64,000 nt of DNA from Podarcis vaucheri. Lineage: Eukaryota. Shown piece by piece: positions 4,038 through 54,891 of the stretch. The stretch lies in NCBI GenBank assembly GCA_965113315.1, contig OZ220371.1. One strand, given 5' to 3'. Every line of letters begins with the position of its first letter. The first letter of the stretch is position 1. The notes under the pieces are model-generated. The model made no database searches and was not told the origin of the DNA. It worked only from the letters and a program-made list of their open reading frames with translations. A program made the position numbers and the translations under genes.

Positions 4038-4254
4038 GTGGTTTTGCCTATCCCACCTCAGGAGTGATACCTTACCTCTTCCTAATTATATGGGAAAAGA
4101 CCCACAGAGTCGCCCCCACCCATATGACAGTATTATCGCAGCACCTAGCCGTATAGGATCCAGTCAAGGAAAAGCTGCTCTCATGTGGTTGGGGCTTCAT
4201 CTAAAGGGCACCTGGAACAGTTGGTAGAACAAAGTGTTGAGGAGTATATCTTAC

Positions 4255-4772
4255 CGAATGAAACCTTTCGGAGGCATAATATTTCCTTCAACGTCCAAAG
4301 GAGGAGCTCGGCACTCACTCCTCAGTTTGAGTTGATCACATCGTTTCATTTCATTCTTTGTTCGGGTCAGAACTCTCTCTTTATGTCTCCGATCCACAAA
4401 CAGTGCGTCCCCTTCAATGAACTTAACGTAGGTGTTCCCATCCAACTGCGAAGGAGGTGGGACTGGTGGCACAGCCATGAATCCTTTCCTGGGAGCAGTG
4501 ATCCATCGCCAGGTGTTGCTATCAAAAGGCTTATCCGGTCTTGGGCGATAGATTGCTGGCAACCTCCCTACATCCAGCCATGTATGGTATCCCCAGACGT
4601 GCCATAGGCTATCCTCTTCCACTGGGCAGCGTATTTTGTGGCTGACACTTATTTTGGCATCTGTGTGGGGTGGTCTTTCAACAGCCAGTTTATGGTAGGG
4701 TCTTGGAGAAAACCCTGGCCATGACACATATTTGTCTGCACAGAGGAAGTGCCTCTCTTTCCATGTGGTCAT
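4255..4772 (-). CDS. TEX52: TEX52 main coding exon
   Basis: Motifs WPGFSPRPYHKLA, WGYHTWLDVGRLPA, PDKPFDSNTWRW and LKLRSECRAPPLDVEGNIMPP match TEX52. Donor CG|gtaag at 4254; acceptor ttcaag immediately before 4772, so an upstream exon is possible. Same position next to FOXM1 as in mammals. Confidence 0.88.
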
Positions 4773-9133: not shown

Positions 9134-10192
9134 TCATTTCCGTTCAGGAATTAACTGTGACCAACTGAGATCAGTACCCAAGTTGTCATCCTCAAGGCCA
9201 GAAAAACTGACATCTAGTAGGATTTTGCTCAAACTGTCATTCATGGTGTCCAGGACTAGGCCTTCCAAGAATGAATGGTTTTCAGGAAGAGCAGAGGCCT
9301 GAAGCTCTGGTGACGACTGTTTGCTGGTTGCAGGAGAGCTGGTCAAGGGCCCAGAGACCATGTCATTGGTTTCTGCATTTAGGAGTGGCAGCTGTGGAGC
9401 ATCACATAACGATGGCCTTAAGGGAGTGCTGCCAAGTCCCAGGATGTCCAAGTTCCCCTGAAGGGATATTAATGAGGTTGGAGGGGTTCTCACAGGACTG
9501 CAAAGCAGACCACTAGTTTCCTTGACAAAAGGTGCCAATCTCCAGGGGTCAGTAGTTGCCAGGAATGGTGCTGGCGTGGTTATGGGGGCTTTACTAGGTA
9601 CGGAAGAAATGGGCAGCTTGCAGAACATCTCTTTTATTGCAGATTTAAAAGGAATGACTTCTCCCTGAGAAGATGTACTTTCCAGAGGATGCGTATCCGT
9701 TGCAAAGGGAGGGTCATTTCCCACCGTGCATGACTCTGACCTACTGGTGGGTTGCAGGAGGAGGACTGGTTCTTCAGAGGAAGGCAGGGCTAAGTGCTGT
9801 TTCCTTCTGGATCTGCCCATTACTTGCCTCTCTTGTCTCTTTATAACCAGTGTGTCCAACTTGCTCCGGGATGGTGACTTGAGAGCTGTAAATGGTCTCT
9901 TCTGCTTTGCAGGTGGGGCTGGAAGGACTATGTCTGGTGGTTCACCCAGTTGCTCTGGCTCTGCCTTTGTAGACGCTGTGGGGAGGAACTGAGGGGCCCA
10001 TGTGTTGGAATGAAAGTTGTCACTCTCCTCTTTTATATGCAGGGCTGGGGCGAATGATTCTTTGCTGATCCAACAGGCGTCCTGCTTTATGGACTGCTGG
10101 GATGTAAATGGAGATAGCTCTCCGTCACAAGTCTCCTCCTTGATGGGGATGGGAGCTGGGAGCAGGGTTGCCTCTTCACTGGACAGCAACAC
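9134..10192 (-). CDS. FOXM1: FOXM1 last coding exon (transactivation domain)
   Basis: Acceptor tattgcag|GTG. Contains RSRRKQHL and EGLVLDTMNDSLSKILLDVSFSGL...SWSQLIPE; TGA at 9134. Confidence 0.95.
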   Translation of the reverse strand: MLLSSEEATLLPAPIPIKEETCDGELSPFTSQQSIKQDACWISKESFAPALHIKEESDNFHSNTWAPQFLPTASTKAEPEQLGEPPDIVLPAPPAKQKRPFTALKSPSRSKLDTLVIKRQERQVMGRSRRKQHLALPSSEEPVLLLQPTSRSESCTVGNDPPFATDTHPLESTSSQGEVIPFKSAIKEMFCKLPISSVPSKAPITTPAPFLATTDPWRLAPFVKETSGLLCSPVRTPPTSLISLQGNLDILGLGSTPLRPSLCDAPQLPLLNAETNDMVSGPLTSSPATSKQSSPELQASALPENHSFLEGLVLDTMNDSLSKILLDVSFSGLEDDNLGTDLSWSQLIPERK

Positions 10193-11292
10193 CTGCAATA
10201 GGAAGACAGAATGAGAGACAGTAAAGTATATTTGACAGCAAGATATTGGTAAAAAAAAAAAACCTCACAAATCAAGGAAATAACAGAAAAGCTAAGGACA
10301 TTACAGTAAGATACAGATGTGCATGTATGTGTGTCTTGATGGGTGCTCTGCTTTAACCATTTGTAACAAGCTTTCCACAAATGTTCACTGAGGAGAAATC
10401 GTTTCCTGGCAATTGATAATATGAAGATGAGGGCAAAGCAATAGGTTGCTCTGTCTCTCTTAGTATTGGGGAGCAGTGTCACTCTCATCCCCTGAAACAC
10501 TCCAGTACTTGGGGGACGACATGCCAGAGGCAGGTATAGCCAAAAGGTCCAACAACATCTGGAGGGTCAAATCTTCCCTGTCCCTCGGTTACACAAGCAG
10601 CACACCTTCAACAGGATCAGCTGTGAAAGAAATGCTGCCTTTTACCCCCAAGTCCAATCAGCCCTCGTGGGCAGCTGGTAACTGGAAGCTAGTCAGCTCC
10701 TTATTTAAAGCTCTCTGAATCCTGTAGGACTTGTTCAGAGCACTGTGGAACTCCCTCCTCAGACAGGTTCCATTTTAACCCTTTAGGCCCCAAAATTCAT
10801 CCTTTTCTTTCAAGCTTTTAATCGTATTTTGGATCCCTATATGCTGGCTTTAGGTTTTCAATCCTATCTGGGAGTAAGTCCCCTGAACCCAATGGGATTG
10901 CCTTTTGAGTAGATAATGTATACGGTTGTGCAGTAAATGTATTTTATTTTTTATTCGTTACTAATTAAATTTGTACATCACCTTTCATCCAAAGATCCCG
11001 GGGTGGTTCACAACAGAAAAATACAAAACGGGAATGCAAAATACAACTTGTCTTTTTTGCTCCTCTTCTTCTACTGGTGTATACTGGTAATTAATTTGTT
11101 TTGTAAGCTGCTTTGAGAGCTTTTAAAACCATTTAAATAATTTCATAATTTTGGAGGGCTTCTTTATGGGTCATTAATGTATTGCTTTTATTTTCTGCTA
11201 TGCCTTTTTGGTTCTCAATCTTTTTTAGGTTGCTTAAAGATGTGATGTATAGTATACAATAAGTGACGCATACATCTGATGATGATAGTTAC

Positions 11293-11500
11293 AGGTAGGT
11301 AGCCGTGTTGGTCTGCCATAGACTACGGCAGACCAACACGGCTATCTACCTGCAACTAGAACTATGGAAGCCACCACATTGAGCCGCATGAAATGGAAGT
11401 CCATCAACAAGCTATCTGAAGAAGTGTGCATGCACACAAAAGCTCATACCAATAACAAACTTAGTTGGTCTCTAAGGTGCTACTGGAAGGATTTTTTTTT
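11293..11500. mobile_element. Penelope-like remnant with fold-back and decayed hammerhead
   Basis: Hairpin aggtaggtagccgtgttggtctgcc...ggcagaccaacacggctatctacct at 11293-11350. The motif ctgaagaagtgtgcatgcacac-AAAA-gctcatac at about 11416-11449 has GAAA mutated. Confidence 0.65.
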
Positions 11501-11735
11501 TATTTTATATGATGATGATGATAATGATGATAGTGTCTTGGGTGATTGTGGCGATTATACCCAATGAGTGCAATATCCTTTACAAAACAGCACTATCAAA
11601 TCAAGGCCTCAGTACAAATGTGGAATGAGGGGAACCACTCTGGAAGTGGGAAATGCCTGCCCCGACAGCCAGGCTGCAAATTTATTCTCATTCTCAGGCA
11701 CAAGCATGGAGTTGGGTACTGATACACAGTCTGAC

Positions 11736-11905
11736 CTTTGGAGCAATGCACACGGGTTTGCTGCTCTGCATGGTCTCTGAGACACCCTGGGATGCAGGAA
11801 GAGGCATCTTTGAAGAAGGTTGAAGGATGACGGACTGACTCAAAGGAAAGTGAATTGGAACTAGGTAGGAGTTGACACGTGGCAGCAAGGGCTTCATTTT
11901 TCGGC
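11736..11905 (-). CDS. FOXM1: FOXM1 coding exon 7
   Basis: RKMKPLLPRVNSYLVPIHFP...IAPK; AG/GT boundaries, phases consistent. Confidence 0.93.
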
Positions 11906-12152
11906 CTAGGAAGGAAAAAAGAGGTCTTAGCCCAGGATCTATCAAAGGTACTTCCTCAATTTTAATTGATCAGCCACCAGAGCCTTCCCAGTTTTGTACT
12001 GGGAAATCTCTGCTTTCATCTCAGTTGCATCAGTGTCCTCCTTCGATTCAAAACTGCACACAAGAGTAATTCCTTGCTGCTTTTCTGGGAATGGAAGCAC
12101 TAGACTGACTATTGTGAGTATTCTACTGACAGCTTGTTCTGGCTTGGGAAGT

Positions 12153-12710
12153 ACCGTATTTTTCGCTCTATAGGACACACCGAACCACAAGACACACCTA
12201 GTTTTTAGAGGGGGAAATCAAGAGTTTCTCGGGGCTGCCGGGGAAGCCCGGGTCCCCCCCCCCAGCCCCAAAGAGCAAAGAAGCCAAGACAGTGAGCGGG
12301 ATCCATCCCGCTGGCTGTCTTGGCTTCTGCCATAGCCGGGCAACCTCTCCAGCCGGGAGCTAAACCTCTCCAGCGTGGCTAAAGAAGCGTGGCTAAAGAA
12401 GCCAAGGCAGGGAGCGCGATCCACCCCGCTCGCCGCCTTGGCTTCCTCTTTAGCCTTGCACAGCCTTTCCCGGCTGCAGAGGCTGCGCGCGGCTATGGCA
12501 ATTCCCCCACCTCCTGCAAAAGCCTACAGGAGCTGAGCACCCTTTAAGGAGCGCGCAGCTCCTGCGGGCTTTTCTACGAGGAGGGAGAAGGGACTGACTG
12601 GCCACGTCAGTCCCTTCTCCCTCCTGGGAAAAAGCCCGCAAGAGCCGCACAAAGCTTGGGGGCTTTTCCTGCCTGCCTCCCCCCCTTCGTTCGCTAGATC
12701 ACTAGCACCA
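12153..12710. mobile_element. GC-rich non-autonomous DNA transposon fragment (pogo/Tigger-like end)
   Basis: Starts ta-ccgtatttttcgctctataggacacaccg; CpG-rich interior with short internal repeats. Right end not resolved. Confidence 0.45.
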
Positions 12711-13348
12711 TGCGTTATGGTTGTACATAGACCTTTTATTTCAAACCTGGGAATTTTTCAGTGTCTCCACATACACGGAAAGTCCCAGTCCTTAGCCCGT
12801 TAGTGGTTTGTATTATACCCAGACAGACGCTGGGGAAGAAGCTTGGAAAGATCTTGAATAATGAAGCTGCCTTCTGTCGAGTTAACCCAGGATCCTGCCA
12901 GATCAGTGCTACTCTGATAAGCAACAGAGGCCTTTCCCTGTACTTCTTTAAGTGGAGAAGTAAGGATTGAACCTGGGACTGTCTGCAAGTAAGCGTACGT
13001 GCTCTCATGTAGCAGGTACTGCCAGGTATTGCTGAGTGCCTGGAGGCTCTTCTGCGGGGCTGCAGTTTCACACAGGCGCTCACCTCCAGGCTAAGAATTC
13101 TGCCTGGCCCTTACGGAGGACTGACATTTACCCCCTGAACTTTGCTTTGCTGGTCTCTGCTTCCTGCCTTGCTTTGCCTTTTCCGTTACAGCCCTCCAGC
13201 CCTCACATGCACACCAGGTGAATACCTCCAACATGTGTAGAAAACGCCCTTGTCCCAGTTCCCATTAAATCCACTGTTGGGGTTTCGTTAGGGAGAAGAA
13301 TTATGCCACTTTCCCTGGGATTGGTAGAGGTGTAGAGTATACACTCAC

Positions 13349-13427
13349 GTGCAGTCTGTGGCTCACTTTTACGACCGCTAGTGCCTCCCATACTCTTCTG
13401 TAGATCTGGAATGTGCCGTTTTTGCTG
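13349..13427 (-). CDS. FOXM1: FOXM1 coding exon 6
   Basis: tag|CAGCAA (NAGNAG acceptor) QQKRHIPDLQKSMGG...TA-R, donor C|gtgagt. Confidence 0.85.
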
Positions 13428-14374
13428 CTACATTAGTTTTAGATTAAGAGAGACAAGAAAACAAAAGTTAGAGAAGCTGCAATTTCCCAGCTGCTTTGTA
13501 TGGATCCGGAGGGCAGTGCTGAACTAATATAAGGAATTTAACTGCCACAGAGCTATGGGGCAATATGTGTCACCTCCTGCTGCAAGCAGACACCCTTGTA
13601 TTTGCTGACTGTCACCCCACAAACCCCACAGAGCCTGACAGAGGTGGCACAACAGAACTCCTTCCACAGCTGTCCTTCAGGCAGGAAGGGGGGTGGAGAG
13701 AGAAAAGAGCTGAGTTTGATAACTCTCACTGCCTGAAGAAATAAAGATAAAAAGATTAATTGTGCAGTGTGTTTCGTTCTACCCAAGTTCAACATGCTTG
13801 AGCACAATGGCAGAAGAAAAGGAGCAGCAGCAAGCAGAGACAGCGCCAGTTGATACACGGAGTCAGTCATACTAGCTATTTGCAAGATTATGGAAAAGAG
13901 CTTTTAGTTTCAGTCCTATCAGCATTGTTGGCTGCTGTCAGGATGCAAGCGATGATGCCATGAGCCTGCCCTCCACTCACCCCCCCATTGTGCTCTCTCT
14001 CACCGTGTTCTAGAAAGATATATTAAGAGGCTTCATTTGCTCCTTTAAACCAAGCATTACAACAGAAATAATCTAAAAATGCACTTGCAGGTGTGCTTTT
14101 TAAAATGTACTGAAAACCCACCATTTGACCAAATATTTCCTTGTGCCCCAAATTAATAGGCGGTGAATAAACTTAAGTATCCACTCATCGGTCCGAGTAG
14201 CATGACTGTAGGTAGCCAAGGCGGCCCCTGCATTTTCCACACGCTTGAAGGAGGCACAAAAGGGGAAGCTGCAGGGGGATCTCAGCTCTGACTAGTAAAG
14301 CAACCTCTATACATCTGCAGGCACCGAAAGAGGGAAGAAAGAAACCCAAGCCCAACCAGGAGGGAAGGTCTTAC

Positions 14375-14419
14375 TGATTCCAAGAGCCCGGGTGATGCTG
14401 GTGACTGCACATCCAGTGG
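14375..14419 (-). CDS. FOXM1: FOXM1 45-nt exon (equivalent of alternative exon Va/A1)
   Basis: cag|CCACTGGAT...TTGGAATCA|gtaag encodes PLDVQSPASPGLLES, homologous to human PLDPGSPQLPEHLES. Confidence 0.85.
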
Positions 14420-15282
14420 CTGGTGGTGGCCAAGTATACAAAAGGAATGAAAAGGAAATTGTCAGCTAAACCGGAGAACAAAGGAACATTTGGGCACAGC
14501 AGACAGTACAGAACAATCTGTGAGTCCTCAGTGAGAAAGTATGCTGAAAGTTTTGTACAATACCAAACGCTTCCAGAGCTTCCAGTGATCAGAAGGTTAG
14601 CCCTGTTTGAGGCTAGATTGGGGGAGAACAAGGAACAGGCTCTTTACAACTAAAACTTTTAAAATAACCAGGCCAAACCACAAAGCGGGTTTCCAGGTTC
14701 ATGCAACCCTCCGCCCCCAAACATAACTTTCTCTTAGCGAGGAAAGAAGTGTGGGTTGTCCATAACAATCCATGGAGAAATGGCAAAAATTAGCCCCTTT
14801 TCTTCTTTACTTAGGGTCTTGAGTCTTGAGGTGTGTGTCATTTTTAAAATTTTGCCAACCTTTATACACACAACTCATTTGCATCTACAAGGCACTGGAG
14901 TGCAAGGCTTCTGTATGCAAATAAGCTGTGGATTTGGCTTAGAAGAAACCTGAGACATACTTTGTACGGAGGTAATCCAAACCTCTGCCTAACCTCCAGC
15001 CTGAAGCATTAACAGGCTGCCTCTCTGTCAGCCAAGCCCTTTACAAACTGCAATGACAGGTAACGATCTGGATTTGACATTTTTTGAACATTTGTGAAAA
15101 ACAAACTTTTCAGATGAACGCATTTTGCCTGAGGGTAGACATACTGTTACCCATTGACTACTATGTTAATATATCGGATTTCTCCATTAATTCCTAGTTT
15201 TCCCAGTTTTCATCCCAATGTTTAAAAATGACTTCTCAATGGCGACCAGGAATTCATGTGTCTAGTCTATAGAGGTGGGGAC

Positions 15283-16110
15283 CATAGAATCATGGCAGAG
15301 TTGGAAGGGACCCAAAGGATCACCGGGTCCTATCCTGCAATGCAGGAATCACAGCTAAAGAATTCCAGACAGATGGCCATCCAAGCTGTTTAAAAACCTT
15401 CAATAAAGGAGTCCACTACCTTCCAAGGTAGTCAGTTCCACTGTCAAACAGCTGTCAGATAGTTCTCCTGCACACATTCTAGCTTGTCATTATCCTTCTT
15501 AAATTGCCCAGAACTGGTTGAAGTATTCCTGGTGGGGTCTGACCAAGGCAGAATAGAGTGGGACTCTTCCTTCCCTTGATCTGGACACTAGACTTCTGTT
15601 GATGCAGCCTAGAACAGCATTAGCTCTTTGCTGCTGCATCATGCTGTTGAGTCATGCTTGTGGATCCTTTTCACATGGCAAACCAGTTGTCCCTGATCTT
15701 ATACTTGTGCATCTGGTTCTTCCTGCCTAAGTGCAGAACCTTTCATCTGTCCTATTGAAATTCATGTTGTTACTTTTGGCTCAGCTCTCCAATCTGTTAT
15801 CCTGATTCTGTCTTCCGCACCCAGTTTGGTGTCTTCTGCTAATTTGATAAACATGCCTTAAATTCCTTCATCCAAGTTGTATATAAAGATGGAGAACAAC
15901 AACGGGCTCAGGACAGAACCCTGTGGCACCCCATTTGTCACTTTTTTCCAGGATGATGAGGAAATATTGGTAAACACTCTTGGGGTTCGGTCAGTCAACC
16001 AGCTACAATTCCACCTAACAATAATCTTCTGCAGCCCAAATTTTACCAGCTTCTCTGCAAGAATTTCATGGAGGACTTGTGTCAAAAGGCTTACTGAAAT
16101 CAAAGTATGT
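15283..16110 (-). mobile_element. CR1 LINE 3' fragment
   Basis: RT motif [17 protein letters not shown] and the CR1 3' end (catagaatcat...gagttggaagggacc). Confidence 0.8.
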
Positions 16111-16464
16111 TAGCTCCACATCCTGTGGCCCTCTGGATACTCCTGGACTACAATTCCCATCATCCCTAACCGTTGGCCATGGGAGTTGAAGTCCAGCAAC
16201 ATTTGGAGGGCCACATGTTCCCCACACTTATCCAGACAATGAGATAGCATTCCTTAACCCTTTTAAAAGGTTTATAGCCACACCAGTACTTAAGACTTTC
16301 CTTTCTGTGAATTCAAGTGATCCATTTCCCTTCTAATACCAAACCTAGGTGATCCAATGCTCACCAGCATGTCTTCACCTGCCTCCTCAGAATGGAAATA
16401 GCCAGGTGCTTGAGAAATCAGGAATTGGTAGGGCAATCTCCTTTTCTGCATGAAAGGTACTTAC

Positions 16465-16593
16465 TTTGAAAACTCGGTCCAGTGTCAAATAGCGGTTGGC
16501 TTCAGGGTGAATGGTCCAGAATGAGATTTTGCCATTGGCAGATGTCTCTCGAACGAACATGTCATGAAGAGAAAGATTGTGCCTTACACAGCT
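16465..16593 (-). CDS. FOXM1: FOXM1 coding exon 4 (second half of forkhead domain)
   Basis: catccag|AGC TGT GTA AGG CAC...TTC AAA|gtaagt, 129 nt, encoding SCVRHNLSLHDMFVRETSANGKISFWTIHPEANRYLTLDRVFK. Confidence 0.95.
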
Positions 16594-18225
16594 CTGGATG
16601 GGAAAGGAGAAAAGCTTGCTGTTTTTTTGTTATCAGTGGATTCTTCAGATGAAATCTTGATAATTCACAAAGACCTTGGCTTTGAATCCTCTGTATCTAC
16701 AGGGGCTGTGCCCCTGCCACATTCCCCACTTTAACCCCCTAGGGCTTCCTCTTCCCGCCCCATGCAACTGCTGAGATCACTTTTCACCTTTCCAACCCAA
16801 TTTTCAAGCCACTTCTCTTCTGTAGCCCTACTTTGCACCCATTTTCACCTTTACCCCCATGTCCATGACTCCTCCTCCTCCTCCTTTTGTGCAAGCTCCT
16901 TTGCACACAAACCAGCCCCATGGCAACCTGATGCATCTTGCTCCTCCCACACATTGTACTACTAAGCACCCTTTTTGCCTTCTGCTCAATTTTGAAGTGA
17001 CCACCCCAATATTCTTCAGACCATTTCATGCCCCTGCTTTCATCTTCACTCCCATTCCTCCCTCTTTGCTCTCATATTTTCATCTCCACTCCCCTTTTCC
17101 GTTCACCCTCCTTACTTTTCTCAACTCTCCCTTGCACCGACCACCCCGCATTTCCATGCCTTATCCTCTCCCCTCTGGCACAGCCCCATCTGCCCACACT
17201 CCCCAATGCTGATATCTGTTACTGTACCTTTAAGACGAATGGCTTCTTAAGAGCAAGCCTTTGAGTTGGCTTGTTCAGTGGGAGAAGATTAAATTCAGTT
17301 GGTGAATGTTGTGTTTATATGGAACTTTGCTTGTTAATAAAATATCCCGTCTAAATTACTGTATTGAATCTGGAACTGGTACCAGGAGTGAAATACATTA
17401 TGTGAAGGTACTGTGACATATTTGAGGGCTCTGCATCTTTGATCTCTCTTGCACAAGGCAGTTGAGCAACAGGGCAAAGTTTAAAAGAGCCCTCGTTCAG
17501 TGCTTCTCCCTCCTTGCTTTATTCAGACAAGAAGTCTGAGTAAAGTTGAGAACTATTCCATTTAAGGTAACATCTGGTGATACGGGGGTTCTGTTTGTGG
17601 TGATTATTAAGTGGCGACTTCTTTCTATATGCAAACAGATGCTTGGTTTTGGAGTCAGGAACTGATGAGCATGCATGTCTGAACCAGGAGATTTTGCTTC
17701 CCAATTTAAGTAAGCTGTTTTGTGGTTCATTTCATATTCTGAATTCACTTCCATGGCCCCAAGGCCAGTTAATACTTATAGTCATCACTTCACGGCTGCA
17801 GTACAAATGGATGTTTTCCATATAAATGTGAACAATCCATCAGAAGTCAAGCAGCACATATAATATGCTGCAGTAAAGTCGCTTCACACAAACCACTGGA
17901 CCCACAAATGCTAAATGATCAAGTGATGCACACTGATGTGTGCCTTTCTTACATGCAATTGCTTCCACAATAATTTAGAACAGCGTAACACAGATGGCAG
18001 GTATATACACTCTCTCCCCCAGGAATTTGTGGGCAAGGCATTGTAAATATACAGTATGGCAAGAGACCATAAATGAGTGAATAGAACCTCACATGCATAC
18101 TAAAAACACCAGGCTCATCAAGATTGTTAATTTCTGCAATAATGCAATTCCACAAAGGGTTCACATCAATGCCTGTTCATATCAAACTGCTTTTCATCCT
18201 CGTTTCATTAGCTATGTGCATATGA

Positions 18226-18260
<35 letters not shown>
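18226..18260. repeat. (TG)n microsatellite
   Basis: Direct reading. Confidence 0.9.
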
Positions 18261-18268
<8 letters not shown>

Positions 18269-18700
18269 CTGCAATTCTGCACAGGTATCAAGAAAGCACA
18301 GAAAGTGAAATAAATTGTACAGCAAAACTTCCTGAGAACCTCAATTTTCTTACAAACGAAACAAGAAAAAATACACAACCACAGGTTTGTAGCATTTCTG
18401 GCTGAAAAGATGTTCACCCACTTGGAAGGAAAATGCCTGCAGAAATCTCAGAAGCACAGGTGTGGAATAGGAGTGCATAGCTCCTTACCCCTCCTTGTGA
18501 TAATACACTCGAGGAATTATTCACAATATGGACCTATAACAAAACACTGCAGTGCAGGCTGCTCCTTTTCAGTGCTTCCATTAGTTGGCAAGGCTCCCCT
18601 CCGTTCTACCTGCCTTTGTCTTCCCCTTGACCTCACAGTCAGCATTACATGGCTACTGAGAAACCCCCCGGCCTGTAGTCTCCCCCCAATGTTTTTTGTA

Positions 18701-18938
18701 CAGTGGTATCTCTACTTATGGATGCGATCCGTTCCAGGGTGCCGTTCGCACCCCGAAAATGTCCATAAGTAGAGTGCCGCTTCTGCACATGACGCAATAG
18801 AGTGCTCCTGCGCATATGTGAAGCGTGCAGAACTCTTCTGCCTGTGTGGCAAAACTCGGAAGTATACACTTCCAGGTTTGTCGCGTTCGCAACCTGAAAA
18901 TACACAACATGAACCTAACACAACTAGAGGTATGACTG
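18701..18938. mobile_element. Tc1/mariner (Tigger-like) MITE
   Basis: TA|cagtggtatctcta...tagaggtatgactg|TA terminal inverted repeats with TA TSD. Confidence 0.7.
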
Positions 18939-19238
18939 TACTTCTCCAAACCTTGGGGTGCCCCCAAGCCTGCTACAGACTGAACATAAGAAACAGGGGG
19001 AATCCTATTCAAAACAAGAAAAACAGAATTCTGCAAAAGCAGATGAATTATGTTAATGTGCTTAATTTCTATGGTTAATGTAAGTTGCAGGGTTCTGCTT
19101 TTCTTGGAACAGCATTTTAATTTTTTTCCTGCAGAATACACATAGCCCTGGTAACATTTGCACCTGAAGGGAGAAAACTGACAGTTGTTTGCGTAATGCA
19201 CTTTCTCCCCTGGCTTTTCAGGTCACGGTGTTTGCTAC

Positions 19239-19439
19239 CTTCCAGCCGGGCTTCGCTGCATGCTTGAAATAAGGGAAATGGTCCTCAATCCAGGTGTAGA
19301 TATCTTTCAGCATCATGCGCTTCTTCTCAGTGCTGTTGATGGCAAACTGGATCATGACCATATAGGAGTAGGGGGGACGTTCAGAGAAGGACTCCTGCCA
19401 TGAGGTCGTAGAGGAAGGCGCTGCAGAACCTTCCTTGGC
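19239..19439 (-). CDS. FOXM1: FOXM1 coding exon 3 (first half of forkhead domain)
   Basis: SWQESFSERPPYSYMVMIQFAINSTEKKRMMLKDIYTWIEDHFPYFKHAAKPGWK; boundaries tcag| and |gtag. Confidence 0.95.
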
Positions 19440-21285
19440 CTGACAAGAAGACAAGAAGACAAGAAGAAGGGTGCGGGGCCTGTAGAATGTTAGTTATATG
19501 AAGAGCTTCTGGATTTTGATGTACCAAACAGTGAACCTCTGAATAGGTTAGGGTTAGCCATTTTAATGGGCAAATATTTAAAGTCCACGGGGCTGCTTCC
19601 CTGCTTGCCAACCCCCACTCGTGAAGCCCCCCCCCCCCCCCGCTCCTCAGAGAAAGGAAACCTTTTTGGCTCCATGAGTGAGATCTTTACTTTGATTGGC
19701 CCTCTTGGCCAAATCTGACAGGTGGGTGGGGCTAAAACAATGGGAGTGGGCAGGGGATACAAACCCTGCTTGAATCAGGAGCGGGCTTGGATGGAATCCT
19801 AGCAAACTGAGCAGGATTAAACCTCCATTCATCTTGAATGCTGATGACATTGAAATGAATTGCAGGGGCTCTAGCAACAAGGTAAAATGTAAGATTGGAT
19901 TAATAATAGATAAACTAATAGGACACGAATTTGCTGAATTAATTATTAAAAGGGATACAAGAACGGGAGACGTGAGGAAGTCAGGAAAATAAGTTAACTA
20001 AAGATGAAATTAAGAAAGAGGGAATTTTTGTTTTGTTTTTTCTATATGTGTTTTTCTTTTTCCGTGTTTAAAGTGTGTATTTTTGTATTATGTAACTTTG
20101 TATTTTCTCTGTCTTTGTATTTTTCTGAACTTTTTTATTGTTAAAACTTAATAAAATATTGATTAAAAAAAATAAAAAATAAACCTCCATTCATCAAAGG
20201 ATAAGCAGGGGTGAAATCCTGCTCAGTCTGACTGTGAACCCATGTTCTTCCTGTGCATCTCACCCAGACAGCACTTCTGCCTCAGGAGCAGGGAGGTGCA
20301 GAGTGGTGGCAGAACAGGACGGCTTTAGGGAAGCTGCCCCAGCCTGCTCTAATACTTCTTCTGCCTGCATCTCCCTAGTCCTCTTCTCTTCTCAAGGTCC
20401 ATTAGCAAAGCATTTCACAGAAGTCTGTTGCAATACTGTAATTCACAGGCCTACCTGTGGCCGCCAGCCAAACTGCAGCATGGCAACGGTCTTACCTTCT
20501 TATGCTATGTACGGTTAATTTAGCAGAAACATATCATTGAGGCTTACATTAGGAAAACCCAGGTTTCCTTAGTGTGTTTGTGAAACTACATAGTCTGTGT
20601 GCTGCAGTGAACAGAATGTGGGGCATGAGTCAGGTTTAAATTCCTCCCAAGCAACAAAGCTGCTCACCGCATGACCCTGCACCAGCTGTTCTCTCCCTGG
20701 TGAACGTCAAGGTGGGATTGCGATGCAATAATTGCAATCCATTATTATTTATAGCATTATGCAAATATGAATTAAAGCAACCCATACGCTGGGAAGAAGT
20801 AGCCTGCCGTTGCTATCAGGTGAAAGAAAGGTGCACTTAAGAATGAAGGTTCCCATCTAAGCAAGGACATTTCATGGAACATTTGGCACCATAAATATAA
20901 ATATCTGCAGTGTTCAGCCAGTTTGCAGTGAGCCTCCTTGCCCATACAGGGTTGCAGTTACCAATCCAGAGATCTCCTCTGCACTTTAAATTGTGAAGTG
21001 CCTGAAGATAAAAAGTCGACAGCAGCTTATCCCACGCTAGAAGCACTGCTGGTCCTTCTGTCTACCTCCTTCCCTCCCTCCCCTTAAGTCCTGCTCACTA
21101 CAATGGGTAGAAGGGGGCAGGCAGACCAACACTGGGACATCAGCAGATGAGAGGGGTCTCTGCAGCCTGGTCTCAAGAGAGCGCAGGTACAAGAGGAGTC
21201 TCTGAATTGCAGCCTGGCCCTATGCACAGACAGCTGGCCCGGCTTCTCTTTCCTTGGCTGTTATTTGGCTGCACACCTTGCTTAC

Positions 21286-21419
21286 CTTAACAGCTTTCTG
21301 CTTGGGGGTCTGGTTCTCCTTCTCTGTCTCCTTTTTCACACTGCAAGGTTTCAGTCCACTATAGCCCATATTGCCCAGCCACAGAATGTTAGTCAGACTG
21401 TTGTCTGCCTCCGCACTGC
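21286..21419 (-). CDS. FOXM1: FOXM1 coding exon 2
   Basis: DNSLTNILWLGNM...KKETEKENQTPK (KEN box); ctag| and |gtaag, phase 1 to phase 0. Confidence 0.9.
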
Positions 21420-21653
21420 CTAGATAAATACAAACTCTTAAGTTCTCATTCTGTAGTCCTAGATTCCCAAAAGAAGGCTTCCAGCTTGAGCCTTAAGCAG
21501 CAGAGTTCAGAGTTTTAAGTAGAGAGAGGCCCACAATGGAGTTTGGGAAGCAGCACTTGAAATAAATTGAGCTTCACATACTGTCGCTGCTCAGTCCCAT
21601 GCACAGTTATGGTTGCCAACATGTTACTGGTCCTGCTTCTGTGCCTTGAAGTA

Positions 21654-21945
21654 CAGTCTGACAGACAGAAATTTAAGAATGTAGATATTATCGTTGAAGG
21701 AGAACAGTCAATCTCGGTTGTCGAACATAATCTGTACTGGAAGACCATTCAACTTCTGAAATGTTCAGCAACTGAGGCGCAGCTTCCGACTGGTTGCAAG
21801 AGCTTCTTGCACTCAAGCAGAAGCTGTGTTGGACATTTGGGTTCCAAAAAACGTTCGAAAACCAGAACATTTACTTCCGGGTTTTCAGCGTTCGGGAGCC
21901 GAAACATTCGAAAATGGAGCCGTTTGAGAACCAAGGTTTGACTAT
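21654..21945. mobile_element. Tc1/mariner MITE remnant
   Basis: CpG-rich interior (ttcgaaaaccagaacatttacttccggg) related to the element at 37159-37390; end ccaaggtttgacta. Confidence 0.5.
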
Positions 21946-22473
21946 ACTAGATTCTATTCCCATTATTATATGTTGTAATTCCTGGAATGCAAGGGGTTGG
22001 ACTAGATGGGTCCCCTCCAACTCTATAATTCTATGGTGCTATGATTTTACCAGTCTTTTATGAATCTTTAGTAAAAGACAATATATAATTTAAAGATTGG
22101 AAACTGACATCCACAGATTTAAACCATAAGCTCCCCCACTTTTGCTATGTTATCTTTAAGGCTGCCTCGTCCCTTGCCTGGAAAGATTTGTTCTAATTCC
22201 ACCACAATTTTTCCTGCCTACCACATTCAAAGTAGCAGAATTGTGACCTCCTCCATTTACTATACTCATTCCATAATAATAATAATAATAATAATAATAT
22301 GCCCCTGTCTTTGCTCTGAACCCGGTGCAAAGAAATCCATTTCCCCAGCAGAGGAAATGTAACAAACACCTTCCCCTGTACCTCTGCCTTTCCTACCCAG
22401 GCTGTCACAGCAGATTATATAGTACATGGTGCAAAGCACCATTCGGTCACAGCCTGCTGTCATTTTCATATTA

Positions 22474-22817
22474 AAAAGGTAGAGGGACCCCTGACCATTA
22501 GGTCCAGTCGTGGCCGACTCTGGGGTTGCGGCGCTCATCTCACTTTACTGGCCGAGGGAGCCAGCATACAGTCATGTGGCCAGAATGACTAAGCTGCTTC
22601 TGACGAACCGGAGCAGCGCACGGAAACGCCATTTACCTTCCCGCTGGAGCGGTACCTATTTATCTACTTGCACTTTGATGTGCTTTCAAACTGCTAGGTG
22701 GGCAGGAGCAGGGACCCAGCAACAGGAGCTCACCCCGTCACGGGGATTCGAACTGCCAACCTTCTGATCAGCAAGTCCTAGGCTCTGTGGTTTAGCCCAC
22801 AGCGCCACCCGCGTCCC
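22474..22817 (-). mobile_element. Sauria SINE
   Basis: Reverse copy of the SINE at 3705; TSD tcattttcatatta on both sides. Confidence 0.85.
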
Positions 22818-23472
22818 TCATTTTCATATTACTCGCACATAGAGACACTTCTACTTTAATTGCCAATTACAGGGTAAATTGAATGGGGCTATATATCTCT
22901 GGCCTCATGCTCTGCACACTTGCCACTCTCAAGTGGCAACTTTAGAGATGGGAGACTATGAGGAGTGCACTTTGCACACAAAAAGAGCACTTTGTACAGA
23001 ATAGCAATCTGTTGTGAGGACAGGCTAACGCCTCTCTGCTTAGAACAGGTTCCCTGCTTCAAGACTCCAGGGCACAAGCACCCAACAGCACCCTCCACTC
23101 CACCAACCAGGGGCGCCAGGACAGAGCACTGCACACAGGTAAACAAGGGAACATATAATACCTGGTACACTTTCCACCACCACCCTCTTTGCCATTTTGG
23201 AATACTGTATTTTGCACCAACTCCTCTCTCCTAAAAGCAGTGCTTTTGGGGTTAAAAAAGAGATGCTAGTACTCGCATCTTGATATATGCATTGTTGGTG
23301 CCAGCACAAAAGAGGTGATGGTACTCCATACTGGTGAGTAGACCCAAAATGCACTGCCTAAAAGCCACCCTTCCCCCCCCCCCGAATAGGCCCTGTCCCT
23401 CCCCCCATCAACTAGCAGCAGTCAAGCAAAGAGAGGGCTGCCCCATGTGTCATAAGAAAAAGAACTACATAC

Positions 23473-23863
23473 TGTTTTCTTCCGGTTCTCGTCCATCCAT
23501 AGACAGCAACTCTTCCATTAATGCAGAGCTTTGCCCAATGTGCTTTTCATCCTCTCCTGCCTTGTCGTGGGCAGTGCTGTGCTCCTCATCAGATTTGAAA
23601 AGATTCTTGAACTCTCTTCTCTCCACCTGGGCATCTGACAAGGTCGGGTGGTCTATTATCTTAATCCCCCCCACAGGCACTTCTCGATTTCCGGGTTCCG
23701 TTTTGTTTGTACCGTGCTCCTTAGGATTTGCTTCTTCCTGCTTAGGAGACCCAACATTCTGGCCACTTGGCTCATCTCCTGCTAAGGTGCTCGCAGCATC
23801 GCTATGTGGGAAAGACAGCTTCCGTCTCTTGAGAATCAGGGGCCTGTGAGGGCTGCTCTTCAT
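23473..23863 (-). CDS. FOXM1: FOXM1 first coding exon (N-terminal domain, shortened)
   Basis: ATG at 23863: MKSSPHRPLILKRRKL...GGIKIIDHPTLSDAQV. Donor A|gtatgt at 23472; exon acceptor at about 23910. Confidence 0.93.
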
Positions 23864-25055
23864 CCTTGACCTGTGCAGTCAATCTCCATTGAGGACAGAA
23901 TGAAGGAACCTGAAAAACACAAAGAACAACATTTCTGTCCAGTTATGAGAACATGTGACAAATTGCGAGGGAGTGTCTTGAAATCAGCTGCTAGGTTTCC
24001 TGCAATATGCTTTTTAAATAAATGAATGGTGTTCTACAGTAGGAATCTTCAACCTTTTCAAACCTTGGGTCCACATTTAACCCAAACATGTTTTTGAGGA
24101 TCCATTTCTTGATATTGTGCCCCACCTTGAACCAGTGGGTCTCGCCCCGCTACTCTACCTCAGGATCAAATAGTAAATGCAGTAAACACAGTAAATGCAG
24201 ATATGCAAAATAAGAGCTGATTAATGATACATATGCAACATCAAAGTTTCAGAAACAGTACATCTCTGAATATCATTCGATGGGGAGCAGCACAAAGGCT
24301 ACTGCCTCCCAGGCCCTGTTGGTGGCTTCCTAAAAGCATATGGTTTGCCACTGTTGTTATGCATGGACTGGGTTGCCTATGGTATGATAGCTAGATCAGG
24401 CAAGGAAAGTTTTCTAAACTGCAGTTTAGAACTGGATTCCCCTCTCCCTTTGGGAACATTAATGTGCTAGAAATGACCAGCCCAGATATGAACAGTCAGG
24501 CAGCTACTAACTTTTCATTTGGACCAGTAACTTTTGTGGTTTGTGTGCAAGACTTAGCAAAATTAAGGAAATAAAGAAATTAAAGCTCAGAATAAGACTA
24601 ATTTCCTTATTGTTGGAGGGAATGTGCTATCAGGCTTTCTCATTACCATAAAAAATATGCTGCTAACTATAAAAGTTTAGATGGGATGTGAGCAAATAAA
24701 CTGCAGCTGAATTCAGAAAAGATGGAGGTAAAGTTAGTGGGTAATTCAAAGGACTGGGCAGGTGGCATTCTGTTCTGGATGGAGTGGCACTCAAAGCTTG
24801 AAGGTGCTGTTTGATCTGGCATGAATTGCTTTCCACCCTGTTGGACAAGTACATCAAGTGCAATTCCTCCTGGACAGCCTAGAGGGCCCCATCTGCCTGC
24901 CCTCCTGAGGTCCCAGACCTAAAGAAAAGCAAGCGGCAAAGAGCAGGAGATGGGCCTTGGAAGCGCTGGTTCAATTACACCCAAGTGCCTGACACTTTTG
25001 TCTTTAAGCACTAAGATTTTAATCCTATTGCCAATGTGTTTTTACTGCTCTACTA

Positions 25056-30699: not shown

Positions 30700-31340
30700 G
30701 TAGCACCACCACCACCAGCTGCGCCTTTCTGGGGCTCCTGGCCCCGGGGCGAGTTCGCGCAGGACTAGCGCCTTAACTGAAAGCGCCGTTGAGACGCCGA
30801 GCTTACGTCACCTTCGGCAGCGCCGCCTCGCTCGCTCGCTCGCTCCCGGCCGGGAATCTCCTCCTCGGGCTTCGCCGCTCGGCTCCGGGGCGGGAGAGGG
30901 ACCCCGTTCCTGGCTCCGGGGCGCCTGCCGGGGCGCGCGTCTTTGGCAAGCGCCGCCTGCCTCTTCGCCCCTCGCCCGGCTCCGCCGCCGCCGCCTTTTC
31001 CTTCGTCCGTCCCGGTTGTTTGAATTTGGCGCCCGGAGAGCTCGGTCCGCGTCACGTGACGCGCCGGGACCAATCGGCATCGGGGCAGAAGAAGAGCGGA
31101 GAACGTCAGGGTGCCTAGAGCGGGGGCGGGGCTTCGGCGGGCTGTGGGCGGAGACAAGGCCGCGCTCCGGAGCGGGGGCTTCGGCGGGATCCCTCCGAGA
31201 TCGCGGTGCGTCTGGCGGCGCTGCCCCCAAGCGGGGGGGCGGCCCTCGGGGAGGGGGCCGCGGCAGGACCCTCTAAGGAGGCTGCGGGCCACATGCTCAG
31301 CCGAAACAAGGAAAGGGGCCGGGAGAGATCAGGGGGTTTG
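30700..31340. promoter_or_regulatory. CpG-island bidirectional promoter of FOXM1 and RHNO1
   Basis: Very GC/CpG-rich and lies between the divergent genes. CHR TTTGAA (31019-31024) abuts an E2F-type TTTGGCGC (31025-31032); palindromic E-box GTCACGTGAC (31051-31060); CCAAT (31070-31074); GC boxes at about 31122-31150. Confidence 0.85.
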
Positions 31341-31347
31341 GGCTGGG

Positions 31348-32438
31348 TGGCCATCAATATACGCAGTGGCGTAGCGGGGGGGGTGCAGGGGGGGCGGGCT
31401 GCACCGGGCGCAACATCTGGGGGTTAGGATTAGGGGGCGCAAATCCACGGGTTAGGGGGCGCAAATTACTTGCCTTGCCCCGGGTGCTGACAACCCACGC
31501 TACGCCACTGAATATACGGATGGTACCCAGCTCTACCTCTCTTTCAAATCAGAACCAGTGAAGGTGGTGAAGGTCCTATGTGAGTGCCTGGAGGCAGTTG
31601 GAGGATGGATGGTGGCAACCAGATTGAGGTTGAATCCTGACAAGACAGAAGTTCTGTTCTTGGGGGACAGGGGGCGGGCTGGTGTGGAGGACTCCCTGGT
31701 CCTGAATGGGGTAACTGCCCCTGAAGGACCAGGTGCGCAGCCTGGGAGTCATTTTGGACTCACAGCTGTCCATGGAGGCGCAGGTCAATTCTGTATCCAG
31801 GGCAGCTGTTTACCAGCTCCATCTGGTACGCAGGCTGAGACCCTATCTGACCACGGACTGTCTTGCCAGAGTGGTGCATGCTCTGGTTATCTCCCGCTTG
31901 GACTACTGCAGTGCGCTCTGTGTGGGGCTACCTTTGAAGGTGACACGGAAACTGCAATTAATCCAGAATGCAGCAGCTAGACTGGTGACTGGGAGCGGGC
32001 GCCGAGACCATATAACACTGGTCTTGAAAGACTTAAATTGGCTCCCAGTACGTTTCCGAGCACAATTTAAGGTGTTGGTGCTGACCTTTAAAGCCCTAAA
32101 CGGCCTTGGTCCTGTATACCTGAAGGAGTGTCTCCACCCCCATCATTCTGCCCGTACACTGAGGTCCAGTGCCGAGGGCCTTCTGGCGGTTCCCTCATTG
32201 CGAAAAGCAAAGCTACAGGGAACCAGGCAGAGAGCTTTCTTGGTGGTGGTGCCCACCCTGTGGAATGCCCTCCCATCAGATGTCAAAGAGAAAAATAACT
32301 ACCAGACTTTTAGAAGACATCTGAAGGCAGCCCTGTTTAGGGAAGCTTTTAATGTTTAATAGGTTATTGTATTTTAGTGTTTTGTTGGAAGCCGCTGACT
32401 GGGGGGACTCAGCCAGATGGGTGGGGTATAAATAATAA

Positions 32439-34151: not shown

Positions 34152-34823
34152 ATAATTCCACAGTTTGAGAGTGCCAGATCACTGGGTCTCCAGAGGTGGT
34201 GCCACGGTTCCCCAAACGTGAAAATAAAGGATACCAACCATGCCATCCCTGTGGTGGCAGGAAGGCGTTGGAGGCCTGCAGCCTACAAGTTTTCTCCACT
34301 AATGTTTGAGAATGCAAAAACAGAATCCTGTGCTGTGGGGACTTCACAACACCCTTTGGACTTTGGTGGACAAGCAGGAAACTTTGAGACATGCTGTAAC
34401 CAGCCAAGGGCTCTTTCTACTCCAGCTTCCGTCAGCCCTACAAGCAATTCTAGGGCTGGGATGGAAAATCTTTGTCCCTGCCCCTTATCTCCTTATGCTG
34501 ACCCAGTTGCATTCAGCCCCCCAGAGAGATGCACTCCAGAACAGCCCTCCGTTGAGGCCCATAATTATTGTCTGCCCCAAATGGATAGCTTTACTCCTGG
34601 CCCATTTAGTAATCAAGTTGGTGAGGATATTTCTAATGACTTTGAGGCTACATCTGTGCTGGTCAAGGACACTCCTGAGGACGAATATGGAGTTAAGGTA
34701 ACATGGCGGAGTCGATCTCTCTTAATGAAATACCTCAGAGAAAAAGGAATGCTGAGCACCAGGGACGTCTTAGTGAAGACACAAATGAGTCCAGTGCTTA
34801 GTGGGGCTGAAGATAGCCAATAG
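34152..34823 (+). CDS. RHNO1: RHNO1 second coding exon
   Basis: ttctcag|ATAATTCCACAGTTT completes W-IIPQF. Also KFSPLMFE and VLVKDTPEDEYGVKVTWR...YLREKGML. TAG at 34823; about 278 aa in total. Confidence 0.9.
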   Translation: MIPQFESARSLGLQRWCHGSPNVKIKDTNHAIPVVAGRRWRPAAYKFSPLMFENAKTESCAVGTSQHPLDFGGQAGNFETCCNQPRALSTPASVSPTSNSRAGMENLCPCPLSPYADPVAFSPPERCTPEQPSVEAHNYCLPQMDSFTPGPFSNQVGEDISNDFEATSVLVKDTPEDEYGVKVTWRSRSLLMKYLREKGMLSTRDVLVKTQMSPVLSGAEDSQ

Positions 34824-52660: not shown

Positions 52661-53653
52661 ATGACTAAAACCCCACCTGAAGTAGAAGTTCCACAGTTCT
52701 CAGAGGATTTTGAAAAGTGGAAATTAGTACAAGAATATAACTTGGAATTAGAGCTTGAGAAAAATACGCTTGGAAAAGAAAAAATTAGGCTTGAGGAAGA
52801 ATTGGAAAAAGAAAAATTGAGGGCTGAGCAAGAATTGGAAAAAGAAAAAGTGAGGGTAGAGCAGGAAAGGGAACAGCAGCGGTTTCAGTTAGAGATGAGA
52901 CAGTTGGAATTAACGGTTTTAGAAAATCCTAATACTAGTAATAACACCGATGGACAGAATCAAATAAAGATAGATTTAAAACGCTTCCCTGAGTTTAGAG
53001 ATAAGGATACCCCAGAACCATTTCTGGTATCCTTCAAAAGAGCCTGTCACGATTTTCAAGTGAGAGATGAAAATAAAATGATGATCTTGAGAGCTAGAAT
53101 AAGTGGTCCTCTAGCCGAAATATACACTCAAATGACTGAGGAACAATCCCGAAAATTTGAGGTGTACAAGCTGTTAATATACACACACTTTGGGATTACC
53201 TCAGAGCAGTTGAGGGAAAAAATTTAGAAGTGTGACAAAGGTGAGGGAGGAAACCTATGTGCAGCTGGGTGCAAAGATAAAAACCTACCTCAGGAGATGG
53301 TTAGAGCAAGAGAATGCAGACACGGTACCTAAGATTAGAGAAGTGATAGCGTTGGAGCAATTTTACAACACAATAAATGGCCAATTGAAGTACCTGATAA
53401 AGGAAAGGAACCCCAAGACAATAGAGGAAGCAGCTGGTTTAGCCGATAAAATAAATGAAATCAGAGACCACGGATTTGATGAGCCAAAAATTGGTGGGAG
53501 ATCTTGGGAAACAAACAAGAATAAATTTCAGCAAACCAAAGGAAAGATTACCTCAGAAACCGATGAGAGAAGTTGCCCCTCGTCAAAAAGCCCACATGAG
53601 AAGGCAGACACCCATACAGAGTTTACTGAGGGAAAAGCCAATAAAACAAGTTA
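52661..53653 (+). pseudogene. Gypsy gag with coiled coil and SCAN-like capsid domain (frameshifted)
   Basis: ELEKEK repeats; ETYVQLGAKIKTYLRRWL...EVIALEQFYNTI...LKYLIKERNPKTIEEAAGLAD. Confidence 0.75.
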
Positions 53654-54252
53654 TGTTGTAGCCTTATGAGGCTTTGCCCTCGGGTGGGAAAAATATTGCG
53701 CCTGGGAAAGGGAAGTGGGAGTCAACAGACACTCAAGGAATAGTTTCGGAGAAAAGGCTTTTTATTTCTACCATCCATGAACTGGTAGAAGGAGCAAGTG
53801 TGATAAGTCACAAAAAGCATGCACGAAGTTCACAGTCCTGTGCACAAGCATATATAGCCCTTTCCAGTTCCCTCCTCCTTTCTCCTCCCTCAGGAGTCCT
53901 GCCCCATGTTGAGGTTCCTGAGCATGTACAGAAAGCTGTCTTGGGACTATTGTGGACTCTTGGCAGGAAAGGGGGTGAGGGGGTTTTCAGAGTGTTCCCG
54001 TTGTTTCATTCTTGTGCTTTGGCATGGTTCCCGGAGAGAAAGCAAGTTGCAACGTGGTTCTGAGAAAGGCCTGAGAAGACAATGGGCTCCGTTCTCTACC
54101 TTGTTGCAATCTTTTTAGTTACAGCAAGTGGAATGTTTCTGATGCTTAGCTGCTGAGAAAATGATTTTGAGAAGCTTTGAGAAGCTTTGAGCTTGCTTTG
54201 GTGGGGGGTGACTTCGGGCCTAGGTGAGATCACTTGTCCTCACTTTCCTTCA
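53654..54252 (-). mobile_element. Solo LTR inserted at the gag zinc-knuckle region
   Basis: TG...CA ends; minus-strand TATA (about 53850) and AATAAA (about 53761). TSD not clear. Confidence 0.6.
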
Positions 54253-54891
54253 TTGCAGGACCCAAAGACATTTCATGCTGGAGATGTGGGAAATTAGGTC
54301 ATAAAAGTTTTGATTGAAAACCTGGAAAAGAAACGTCTAGTTACAGCACCACACAGAAGCAGACATATTGTATGCAGCCTGTGGAGCAGGGCCCAACTAG
54401 TCAGGTTGTCAAGGAAACGGCCATGCCCACTAGGCCCGAGCCTGCTGAGGTAGTAGAAGCCAAAGTCCTGCACTGTTATGCGATTCAACAAGATAATCTC
54501 TTGTTAAAGAAGGCTGGAGAGTATATCTGGATAGACGGAAAAAGATATTTCGGGTTAAAGGACACGGGATCACAAGTCACTATGGTCCACCCTGAGATAA
54601 TCAGGGATAATTCCAGGGAAATTAATGAAATTAAAAGGAATTTCGAAACAAGCAGAGATCCTAAAGGTGGCGGAAATAGATGTCAGGTTCAAAAACTGGG
54701 CAGGGAAGTGGCAGGTAGCCCTTTCGGAAGAAATTCCCGCCCCTGTGCCCATTGGTTGGGAGATTTTAGAACATGTGCAGAGTGCTTTCATAGTTAGCAG
54801 AGCAAAAGGGAGCCCACAGTCACCTAATCCTGAGGGGGTGGATACAGTAGCAGAGGCAGACAATGCTGAAGGACAGCAAGGGGATGATCAG

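Follow-up and report, generated by a model that had tools for sequence, protein, structure and literature searches.

FOXM1 is a master activator of G2/M genes, ranks with the factors most consistently found over-active in human cancers and is essential in mice. Here we describe a FOXM1 gene on the minus strand of a 64,000-nucleotide stretch of the Podarcis vaucheri genome (assembly GCA_965113315.1, contig OZ220371.1; the whole stretch is hereafter the window), which has lost the core of its negative regulatory domain (NRD), the module that silences the transactivation domain (TAD). On balance, the locus suggests that autoinhibition was really lost, that constraint then relaxed and that the reading frame is still kept.

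The autoinhibition has been described for the human protein, in which the NRD and TAD form a complex of a five-stranded sheet and one helix (PMC6538375). Its core is built from the strand residues I64, V76, I78, F106 and L108, the helix residues I84, I87, I88 and L91 and the TAD residues L709 and L716; deletion of the NRD or the substitution I88A makes FOXM1 active without cyclin-dependent kinase (CDK), PLK1 phosphorylation at S715 frees the TAD after CDK priming, and alanine mutants of T596 and S678 show reduced activation (PMC6538375). On the side of DNA binding, N283A has a dissociation constant for the forkhead consensus of >5 uM versus 1.1 uM, R286A or H287A loses most binding sites and target activation, and human mutants of the DNA-binding domain keep their contacts with LIN9, LIN54, B-MYB and PLK1 yet lose most genomic sites and the activation of targets (PMC4492089). 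The LIN9 contact has been placed in FOXM1 residues 1-367, and a peptide of residues 1-138 is reported to compete with the binding of LIN9 and B-MYB (PMC6568178). Zebrafish foxm1 mutants grow into viable adults, of which the males are infertile (PMC10108034).

The lizard form resembles the engineered human NRD-deleted or core-mutant proteins (delta-N, I88A and V76A; PMC6538375), with which it shares the loss of the NRD-TAD fold next to an intact TAD, the LVL...DSLSKILL hairpin and both PLK1 serines included. Those mutants are CDK-independent and constitutively active in human cells, whereas the lizard form is natural and its activity is predicted from sequence. It differs further in the extent of the loss, which takes only strand beta2, the helix and strand beta3 and spares the KEN box, strand beta1 and the first 80 residues, and in having, besides, an altered forkhead domain and a CDK-site region short of one conserved SP site. 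With canonical FOXM1 of Podarcis and other lacertids it has in common the locus, the exon structure, the alternative exon Va, the motifs FKSAIKE and SSVPSK and the TAD, but it is set apart by three in-frame deletions and 25 derived substitutions, 13 of them in exons 2-4, which are near-invariant in its relatives. The helix-3 asparagine changed in human N283A is altered here as well; by comparison of the sequences alone, the lizard replaces Asn by Ser and the SI that follows by CV, and it retains the Arg, His and Ser of the helix. The zebrafish line offers the case of a cold-blooded vertebrate reaching adulthood despite a defective FOXM1, but it is an induced null, whereas the lizard allele is an open frame in two sampled individuals. 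To our knowledge, NRD-deleted FOXM1 forms were previously only laboratory constructs or cancer-cell products, and a natural deletion of the NRD core in a healthy species, within an otherwise open gene, tests vertebrate life with an unlocked FOXM1.

Deletion of the NRD core

The window FOXM1 lacks 41 NRD residues after ...SDAQV, comprising strand beta2, the helix and strand beta3. They are missing through an in-frame deletion of 123 bp (41 codons) in coding exon 1, whose junction lies at 23623-23625 on the minus strand and whose flanks share 3 nt (TGG). In a protein alignment of the window copy with P. lilfordi (P0170), P. raffonei (P0173), two versions of P. muralis (P0177 and P0055), Lacerta agilis (P0054), Zootoca (P0056) and 13 other reptiles, this 41-residue gap was unique to the window copy, and all of the 128 fetched FOXM1 proteins with an N-terminus retain the NRD helix end and strand beta3. 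Eight of the nine NRD core residues (human I64, V76, I78, I84, I87, I88, L91, F106 and L108; PMC6538375) fall in the deleted segment and the beta1 equivalent (IKII) alone remains, so that the window protein does not preserve the core. A tblastn search of the window with the 41-residue peptide returned chance matches only (best E 1.2), and the segment has therefore not moved nearby.

The other half of the lock is present. The TAD motif is kept at residues 693-713 (9265-9203), and EGLVLDTMNDSLSKILLDVSF is retained with the hairpin residues and PLK1 serines (human L709, S715, L716 and S724). As only the beta1 equivalent is kept, the lock presumably cannot form, and since the lock would be gone with the TAD and both PLK1 serines intact, the TAD should be constitutively exposed.

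We compared the public Logan contigs of four sequencing runs (X1, X3, X4 and X7) with window positions 18100-24099, which hold exons 1-3. X1 and a further run, X2, are from organism A, the species of the window, and probably from the source sample, X3 is from organism A but from another sample and study, and X4 and X7 are from organisms B and C, two sister species. Contigs drop rare variants, which leaves room for heterozygosity, and the scoring of sites in X3, X4 and X7 rests on the differences listed, with 269 further rows beyond them. The X1 contig passes ungapped through the exon 1 junction and carries the 123-bp deletion, and record 16 of X3, which spans 22774-24099 in one piece (1307 versus 1326 letters), is also without the 123 bp. 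The contigs of X4 and X7 split at 23623-23625 with 120 extra letters, and their pieces overlap by 3 nt, which makes the event a 123-bp deletion with 3-nt microhomology. The NRD segment is thus retained in organisms B and C, and its deletion, carried by both sampled individuals of organism A, is a trait of that species. An earlier note on this DNA, made from the letters alone, had proposed that the NRD core was lost and autoinhibition with it; the alignment and the contigs of two individuals confirm the loss, and the sequence gives good grounds for a loss of autoinhibition, eight of nine core residues being deleted and the TAD hairpin and PLK1 serines kept. Besides, X1 and the window disagree at two sites of exon 1 (23592 and 23678), one of them S91C and the other synonymous, and either the sample is heterozygous here or it does not carry the assembled haplotype.

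Changes in the central region, the forkhead domain and the CDK sites

Apart from the NRD, the assembled haplotype has later lesions at sites that do not vary in other squamates, namely a 15-bp deletion beside SLTNIQWL, eight forkhead changes and the loss of an SP site. In exon 2, the 15-bp deletion (TSSVL) lies between 21405 and 21406 and was found in the alignment in the window copy alone; the exon also has T135A, Q143L, S149G, S150Y and I174V, codon K154 also being listed as changed. Q143L lies inside SLTNIQWLG, and all of the 137 fetched FOXM1 proteins with an SLTNI.W motif have Q at this site. The changes in exon 3 are E177K, S183P, A203V (in helix 1, YMAMIQ to YMVMIQ) and V236A, and those in exon 4 are Q282R and NSI to SCV at the start of helix 3. 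The codons of the latter, AGC TGT GTA (16593-16585), give SCVRHNLS instead of NSIRHNLS. Among 135 fetched FOXM1 proteins, NSIRHNLSLH follows KPGWK in 134, the lone exception retains NSI, and the Asn is present in all 135, which bears out the loss of the helix-3 Asn reported in the earlier note. A search for an alternative acceptor that would bring back the Asn was negative. RHNLS itself is intact, with the Arg, His and Ser corresponding to human R286, H287 and S290. Over exons 3 and 4 together, the forkhead domain is identical in six other lacertids and Rhineura and has eight changes in the window copy. It was also observed that NSI to SCV (16585-16593) and SS to GY (21361-21366) each involve at least 3 base changes within 7-9 nt, and these adjacent-codon lesions seem to have arisen in multi-nucleotide events and not by independent substitutions.

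In the last exon, a 12-bp deletion (QFSC) inside 9682-9659 is again confined to the window copy, and all three indels of the gene (41, 5 and 4 residues) are multiples of three. Window-specific changes in this exon include S648A (DSPQLP to DAPQLP, 9406-9386, minus strand), P714S, L734R, SFSGLED and IPERK, among others; the SP site of DSPQLP is kept by all 15 other squamates compared.

We take the motifs FKTPIKE and DSPQLP to be the human CDK sites T596 and S678, respectively. Both are altered in the window, DSPQLP as DAPQLP in this copy only and FKTPIKE as FKSAIKE (9649-9629, minus strand), a form shared by all lacertids examined. A third motif, SSVPSK (9607-9590, minus strand), is the counterpart of SSTPSK and is lacertid-wide too. 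FKSAIKE and SSVPSK (residues 565-584) occur in all four other lacertids, whereas most of the other reptiles compared have FKTPIKE and SSTPSK. By this assumed matching of residues, the lacertid family appears to be without a T596-equivalent CDK site, and its loss of two conserved TP motifs bears on the generality of the CDK-to-PLK1 priming model. The earlier note had counted three lost S/T-P sites; all three are absent, but two of them are features of lacertids at large and only DAPQLP is specific to this copy.

Lesions of different age

The contigs also separate the lesions in time. The X1 contigs match exons 2 and 3 with zero differences. Of the changes there, the 15 letters of TSSVL are absent from the window and X1 and present in X3 and X4, S183P (site 19418) is found only in the window and X1 with Ser in X3, X4 and X7, and codons 150 and 154 are unlike the window in all of X3, X4 and X7. 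Since the NRD deletion is common to two individuals and the loss of TSSVL and S183P belong to the assembled haplotype only, the lesions differ in age. The long contig pieces diverge from the window by roughly 1.0% (X3), 2.2% (X4) and 3.1% (X7). Assembly errors, which the earlier note had named as a way to refute it, were thereby checked in exons 1-3, and the NRD deletion and the changes of exons 2 and 3 are confirmed in contigs. Its proposal that the lesions are coordinated is not supported, as their ages differ, two of the S/T-P losses predate the lacertid family and, as set out below, conserved columns changed at chance rate.

Some further differences were seen among the runs. X3 has its own M148T (21368) at a Met kept by all compared proteins, and it shares P155L (codon 155, 21347) with organism B. 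Moreover, the RHNO1 gene of the window is nearest to that of P. muralis and its FOXM1 nearest to that of P. lilfordi, which hints at mosaic ancestry; this mismatch, the sharing of P155L and M148T give together a hint of shared polymorphism or introgression at the locus. An AG insertion behind 21520 (intron 1) is present in all four runs, the probable source sample included, and the window probably has a 2-bp assembly error there or else a rare allele. Immediately before the exon-3 acceptor, the polypyrimidine tract contains an 8-bp unit (19442-19449) in the window, X1 and X7 that X3 and X4 lack.

Probable relaxed constraint on an open gene

The rate and the placement of substitutions were examined next to the lesions. 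With other lacertids as reference, 25 derived substitutions were assigned to the window and one to P. lilfordi (Tajima relative-rate test, p=2.5e-6), and the end branch of the window copy measures 0.039 in the tree versus 0.004-0.024 for other Podarcis. Columns conserved among squamates make up a 49% share, and 12 of the 26 changes unique to the window fall on them (p=0.85), whereas in the four other lacertid tips only 10 of 62 changes do so (p=1e-7 versus the same share); the two proportions differ from each other (Fisher p=0.006). Such a placement is what an end of purifying selection on the conserved core would produce. At the same time, FOXM1 bears no mark of a pseudogene over its 735 codons, be it a stop, a frameshift or a lost splice site, and the open frame argues for some remaining constraint.

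These observations fit a course of events in which the 123-bp in-frame deletion would have taken out NRD beta2, helix and beta3, leaving a lock that can no longer fold and a TAD free without CDK/PLK1 priming. Selection would then have relaxed on a release circuit that had become useless and on the central and DNA-binding region, and the outcome would be a deregulated FOXM1 with poor binding of forkhead motifs through its SCV helix. As the frame is still kept open, such a FOXM1 probably does part of its job. On this account, the gene would be neither a coordinated redesign nor a duplicate.

Several points weigh against this account. Exons 2-4 hold 13 of the 25 derived changes on 21% of the length (p=6e-4), and still 10 of 22 when adjacent changes are merged into events (p=0.015); plain relaxation does not predict such an excess, and therefore positive or compensatory selection or clustered mutation could be involved. 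RHNO1 has five unique changes in the window versus one to three in other Podarcis (four compared; the counts are small), and since the RHNO1 of the window is thus also the most changed, part of the long FOXM1 branch may reflect time and not rate. In addition, the contig check covers exons 1-3, and helix 3 and the DAPQLP site rest on the assembly.

Alternative explanations

Among the alternatives, a unitary pseudogene in the making, in which the function of FOXM1 is already lost and the frame is open by chance, is rather unlikely. The chance-rate change of conserved columns, the eight changes in a forkhead domain that is invariant among relatives and the polymorphic state of the further lesions are all in keeping with it, and zebrafish foxm1 mutants do reach viable adulthood (PMC10108034). 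Against it stand eight exons without stop, frameshift or lost splice site; all three indels in frame would come about by chance with a probability of about 0.04, and the probability of no stop is 0.19-0.39 for 25-45 random substitutions. The TAD, moreover, is kept apart from a P-to-S change immediately behind it, and nothing has changed in the N-terminal degron region. The zebrafish mutants argue against the idea too, since the males are infertile (PMC10108034) and a null should not fix; with viable adults and infertile males, a weakened allele is plausible and the fixation of a null unlikely. Should the gene be decaying nevertheless, the question of its replacement would arise. We know of no earlier case of FOXM1 erosion in an amniote.

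An adaptive or compensatory rewiring, in which the changes of exons 2-4 tame an active FOXM1 or shift it to tethering through MuvB/B-MYB or NFY, is in our view unlikely. It would account for the enrichment of derived changes in exons 2-4 beyond a uniform neutral expectation, and the 10-13 core changes exceed what is expected at a per-lineage neutral divergence of 1.1-1.5% (P 0.0003-0.06). The result depends on branch length, however: at 1.1% divergence, at least 10 events in exons 2-4 have a probability of 0.009, and at 2.2% this rises to 0.29, so the enrichment, already smaller with adjacent changes merged, is gone at the higher value. The open frame and the three in-frame indels out of three also count in its favour, as do the human DNA-binding domain mutants that still bind LIN9, LIN54, B-MYB and PLK1 (PMC4492089), but the lesions are not contemporaneous and R286A or H287A forfeits most sites and activation (PMC4492089). 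The earlier note had likewise pictured a MuvB-tethered FOXM1. This is not supported, on two counts: the deleted N-terminal region belongs to the reported LIN9/B-MYB contact region (PMC6568178), and DNA-binding domain mutants hold their MuvB contacts but largely cease to bind chromatin and to activate targets (PMC4492089). The narrower proposal of a FOXM1 in a wild vertebrate that is unlocked and short of conserved CDK-site motifs, and whose central-region and helix changes reflect compensatory selection taming its constitutive activity, is quite doubtful. If true, it would be a natural experiment on the buffering of oncogene-like deregulation and would show which residues buffer.

A canonical FOXM1 elsewhere in the genome, as an old duplicate or a transposed copy that relieves this locus of selection, would explain how constraint could relax on a gene that mice cannot do without, but we hold it to be very improbable. 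The window FOXM1 is flanked by its ancestral neighbours. Downstream lies a gene of the DUF4532 family (exon at 4251..4772, minus strand; PF15046, 2e-58), which we take to belong to the TEX52 family, and the divergent upstream neighbour is RHNO1 (main coding exon at 34218..34823, plus strand), with 96% identity to P. muralis RHNO1 and a Pfam RHINO match at 1e-25. The order TEX52-FOXM1-RHNO1 is presumably the ancestral arrangement, and because these two genes flank it, the window FOXM1 is the orthologous locus and not a stray duplicate. In the maximum-likelihood tree it falls within Podarcis with 100/98 support, lacertids are the closest group when squamate FOXM1 proteins are compared with the window by tblastn, and it agrees with P. 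lilfordi in 96% of the aligned columns. At a likeness of at least 88%, the contigs showed no second copy of FOXM1, with one contig per run on exons 1 and 3 in two individuals, although this check in contigs leaves room for older or more diverged copies; exon-exon joints of a retrocopy were not found among the 15 contig joints listed of 208. Annotated lacertid genomes have one FOXM1 gene apiece. The alternative offered by the earlier note, a duplicate under relaxed selection, was thus right in its relaxed selection and wrong in its duplicate, given the synteny and the single contig per run.

An assembly or haplotype artefact is scarcely credible: the AG insertion behind 21520 in four runs shows that the assembly is not letter-perfect and the X1 contig is unlike the window at two exon-1 sites, but the X1 contigs equal exons 2 and 3 without difference, the 123-bp deletion is found in X1 as well as in the independent X3, and a three-codon change is atypical of sequencing error.

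Gene model and promoter region

The FOXM1 gene has eight coding exons and 735 codons without a stop, as established by a check of splice sites and translation with exon Va included; without exon Va it has seven exons and 720 codons plus the stop. All 14 of the internal splice dinucleotides are AG or GT, and the 64,000 nucleotides contain zero N letters. The earlier note had given eight canonically spliced exons with a 735-residue frame, and these were recovered here.

All exons lie on the minus strand. Coding exon 1 (23863-23473) begins with the ATG at 23863, encodes residues 1-130 plus 1 nt and ends in the donor ACA|GTATGT; it keeps RPLILKRR (residues 7-14) and NRD strand beta1 (GIKIIDHP...AQV), and an acceptor for a 5' untranslated part is located near 23912, upstream of the ATG exon. 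Coding exon 2 (21419-21286) encodes residues 131-175 with the SLTNI(L)WLG motif and the KEN box, KEN being found at residues 163-167 within EKENQ. Coding exons 3 (19439-19239; residues 176-242) and 4 (16593-16465; residues 243-285) carry the first and second halves of the forkhead domain, with matches to Pfam PF00250 at profile positions 1-48 (9.5e-16) and 50-85 (4.5e-7), respectively. The domain is divided between them at the KPGWK|NSIRHN site (boundary 19239/16593), so that the FOXM1-type split is present. The alternative exon Va (14419-14375) has 45 nt and 15 residues, PLDVQSPASPGLLES, with AG/GT borders, and is the same as in other Podarcis. It is followed by coding exon 5 (13427-13349; QQKRHIPDLQK...), coding exon 6 (11905-11736; RKMKPLLPRV...) and the last coding exon (10192-9134), which holds the CDK-site region and the TAD (9265-9203) and ends in the stop codon at 9136-9134. 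FOXM1 proteins were the only matches in a protein search with this last exon. An exact look-up of three window open reading frames in a protein collection gave no match.

Between FOXM1 and RHNO1, about 7 kb upstream of the ATG exon, a CpG island extends over about 30750-31250. It contains a CHR-like TTTGAA immediately before an E2F-like TTTGGCGC (31019-31032), as motif matches only, along with CCAAT (31070) and CACGTG, and is likely a shared FOXM1/RHNO1 promoter, a candidate suggested by its motifs. The TAD, RPLILKRR, the KEN box and the CHR/E2F motifs, all named in the earlier note, were located in this way, the promoter as motifs only.

Repeats around the locus

Intron 1 contains a very high-copy interspersed repeat at 22300-22900, with a summed contig depth in the millions, which is probably a short interspersed nuclear element. 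Three lesser repeats are located in introns 1-3 (18700-19100, 19700-20300 and 21700-22100). Remnants of reverse-transcriptase-like open reading frames were found at 15858-16103 (minus strand) in FOXM1 intron 4, at 31558-32359 (plus strand) beside the CpG island and at 60212-60625 (minus strand) near the right end of the window, and a run of gag/pol/integrase-like open reading frames occupies 52661-57049 on the plus strand.

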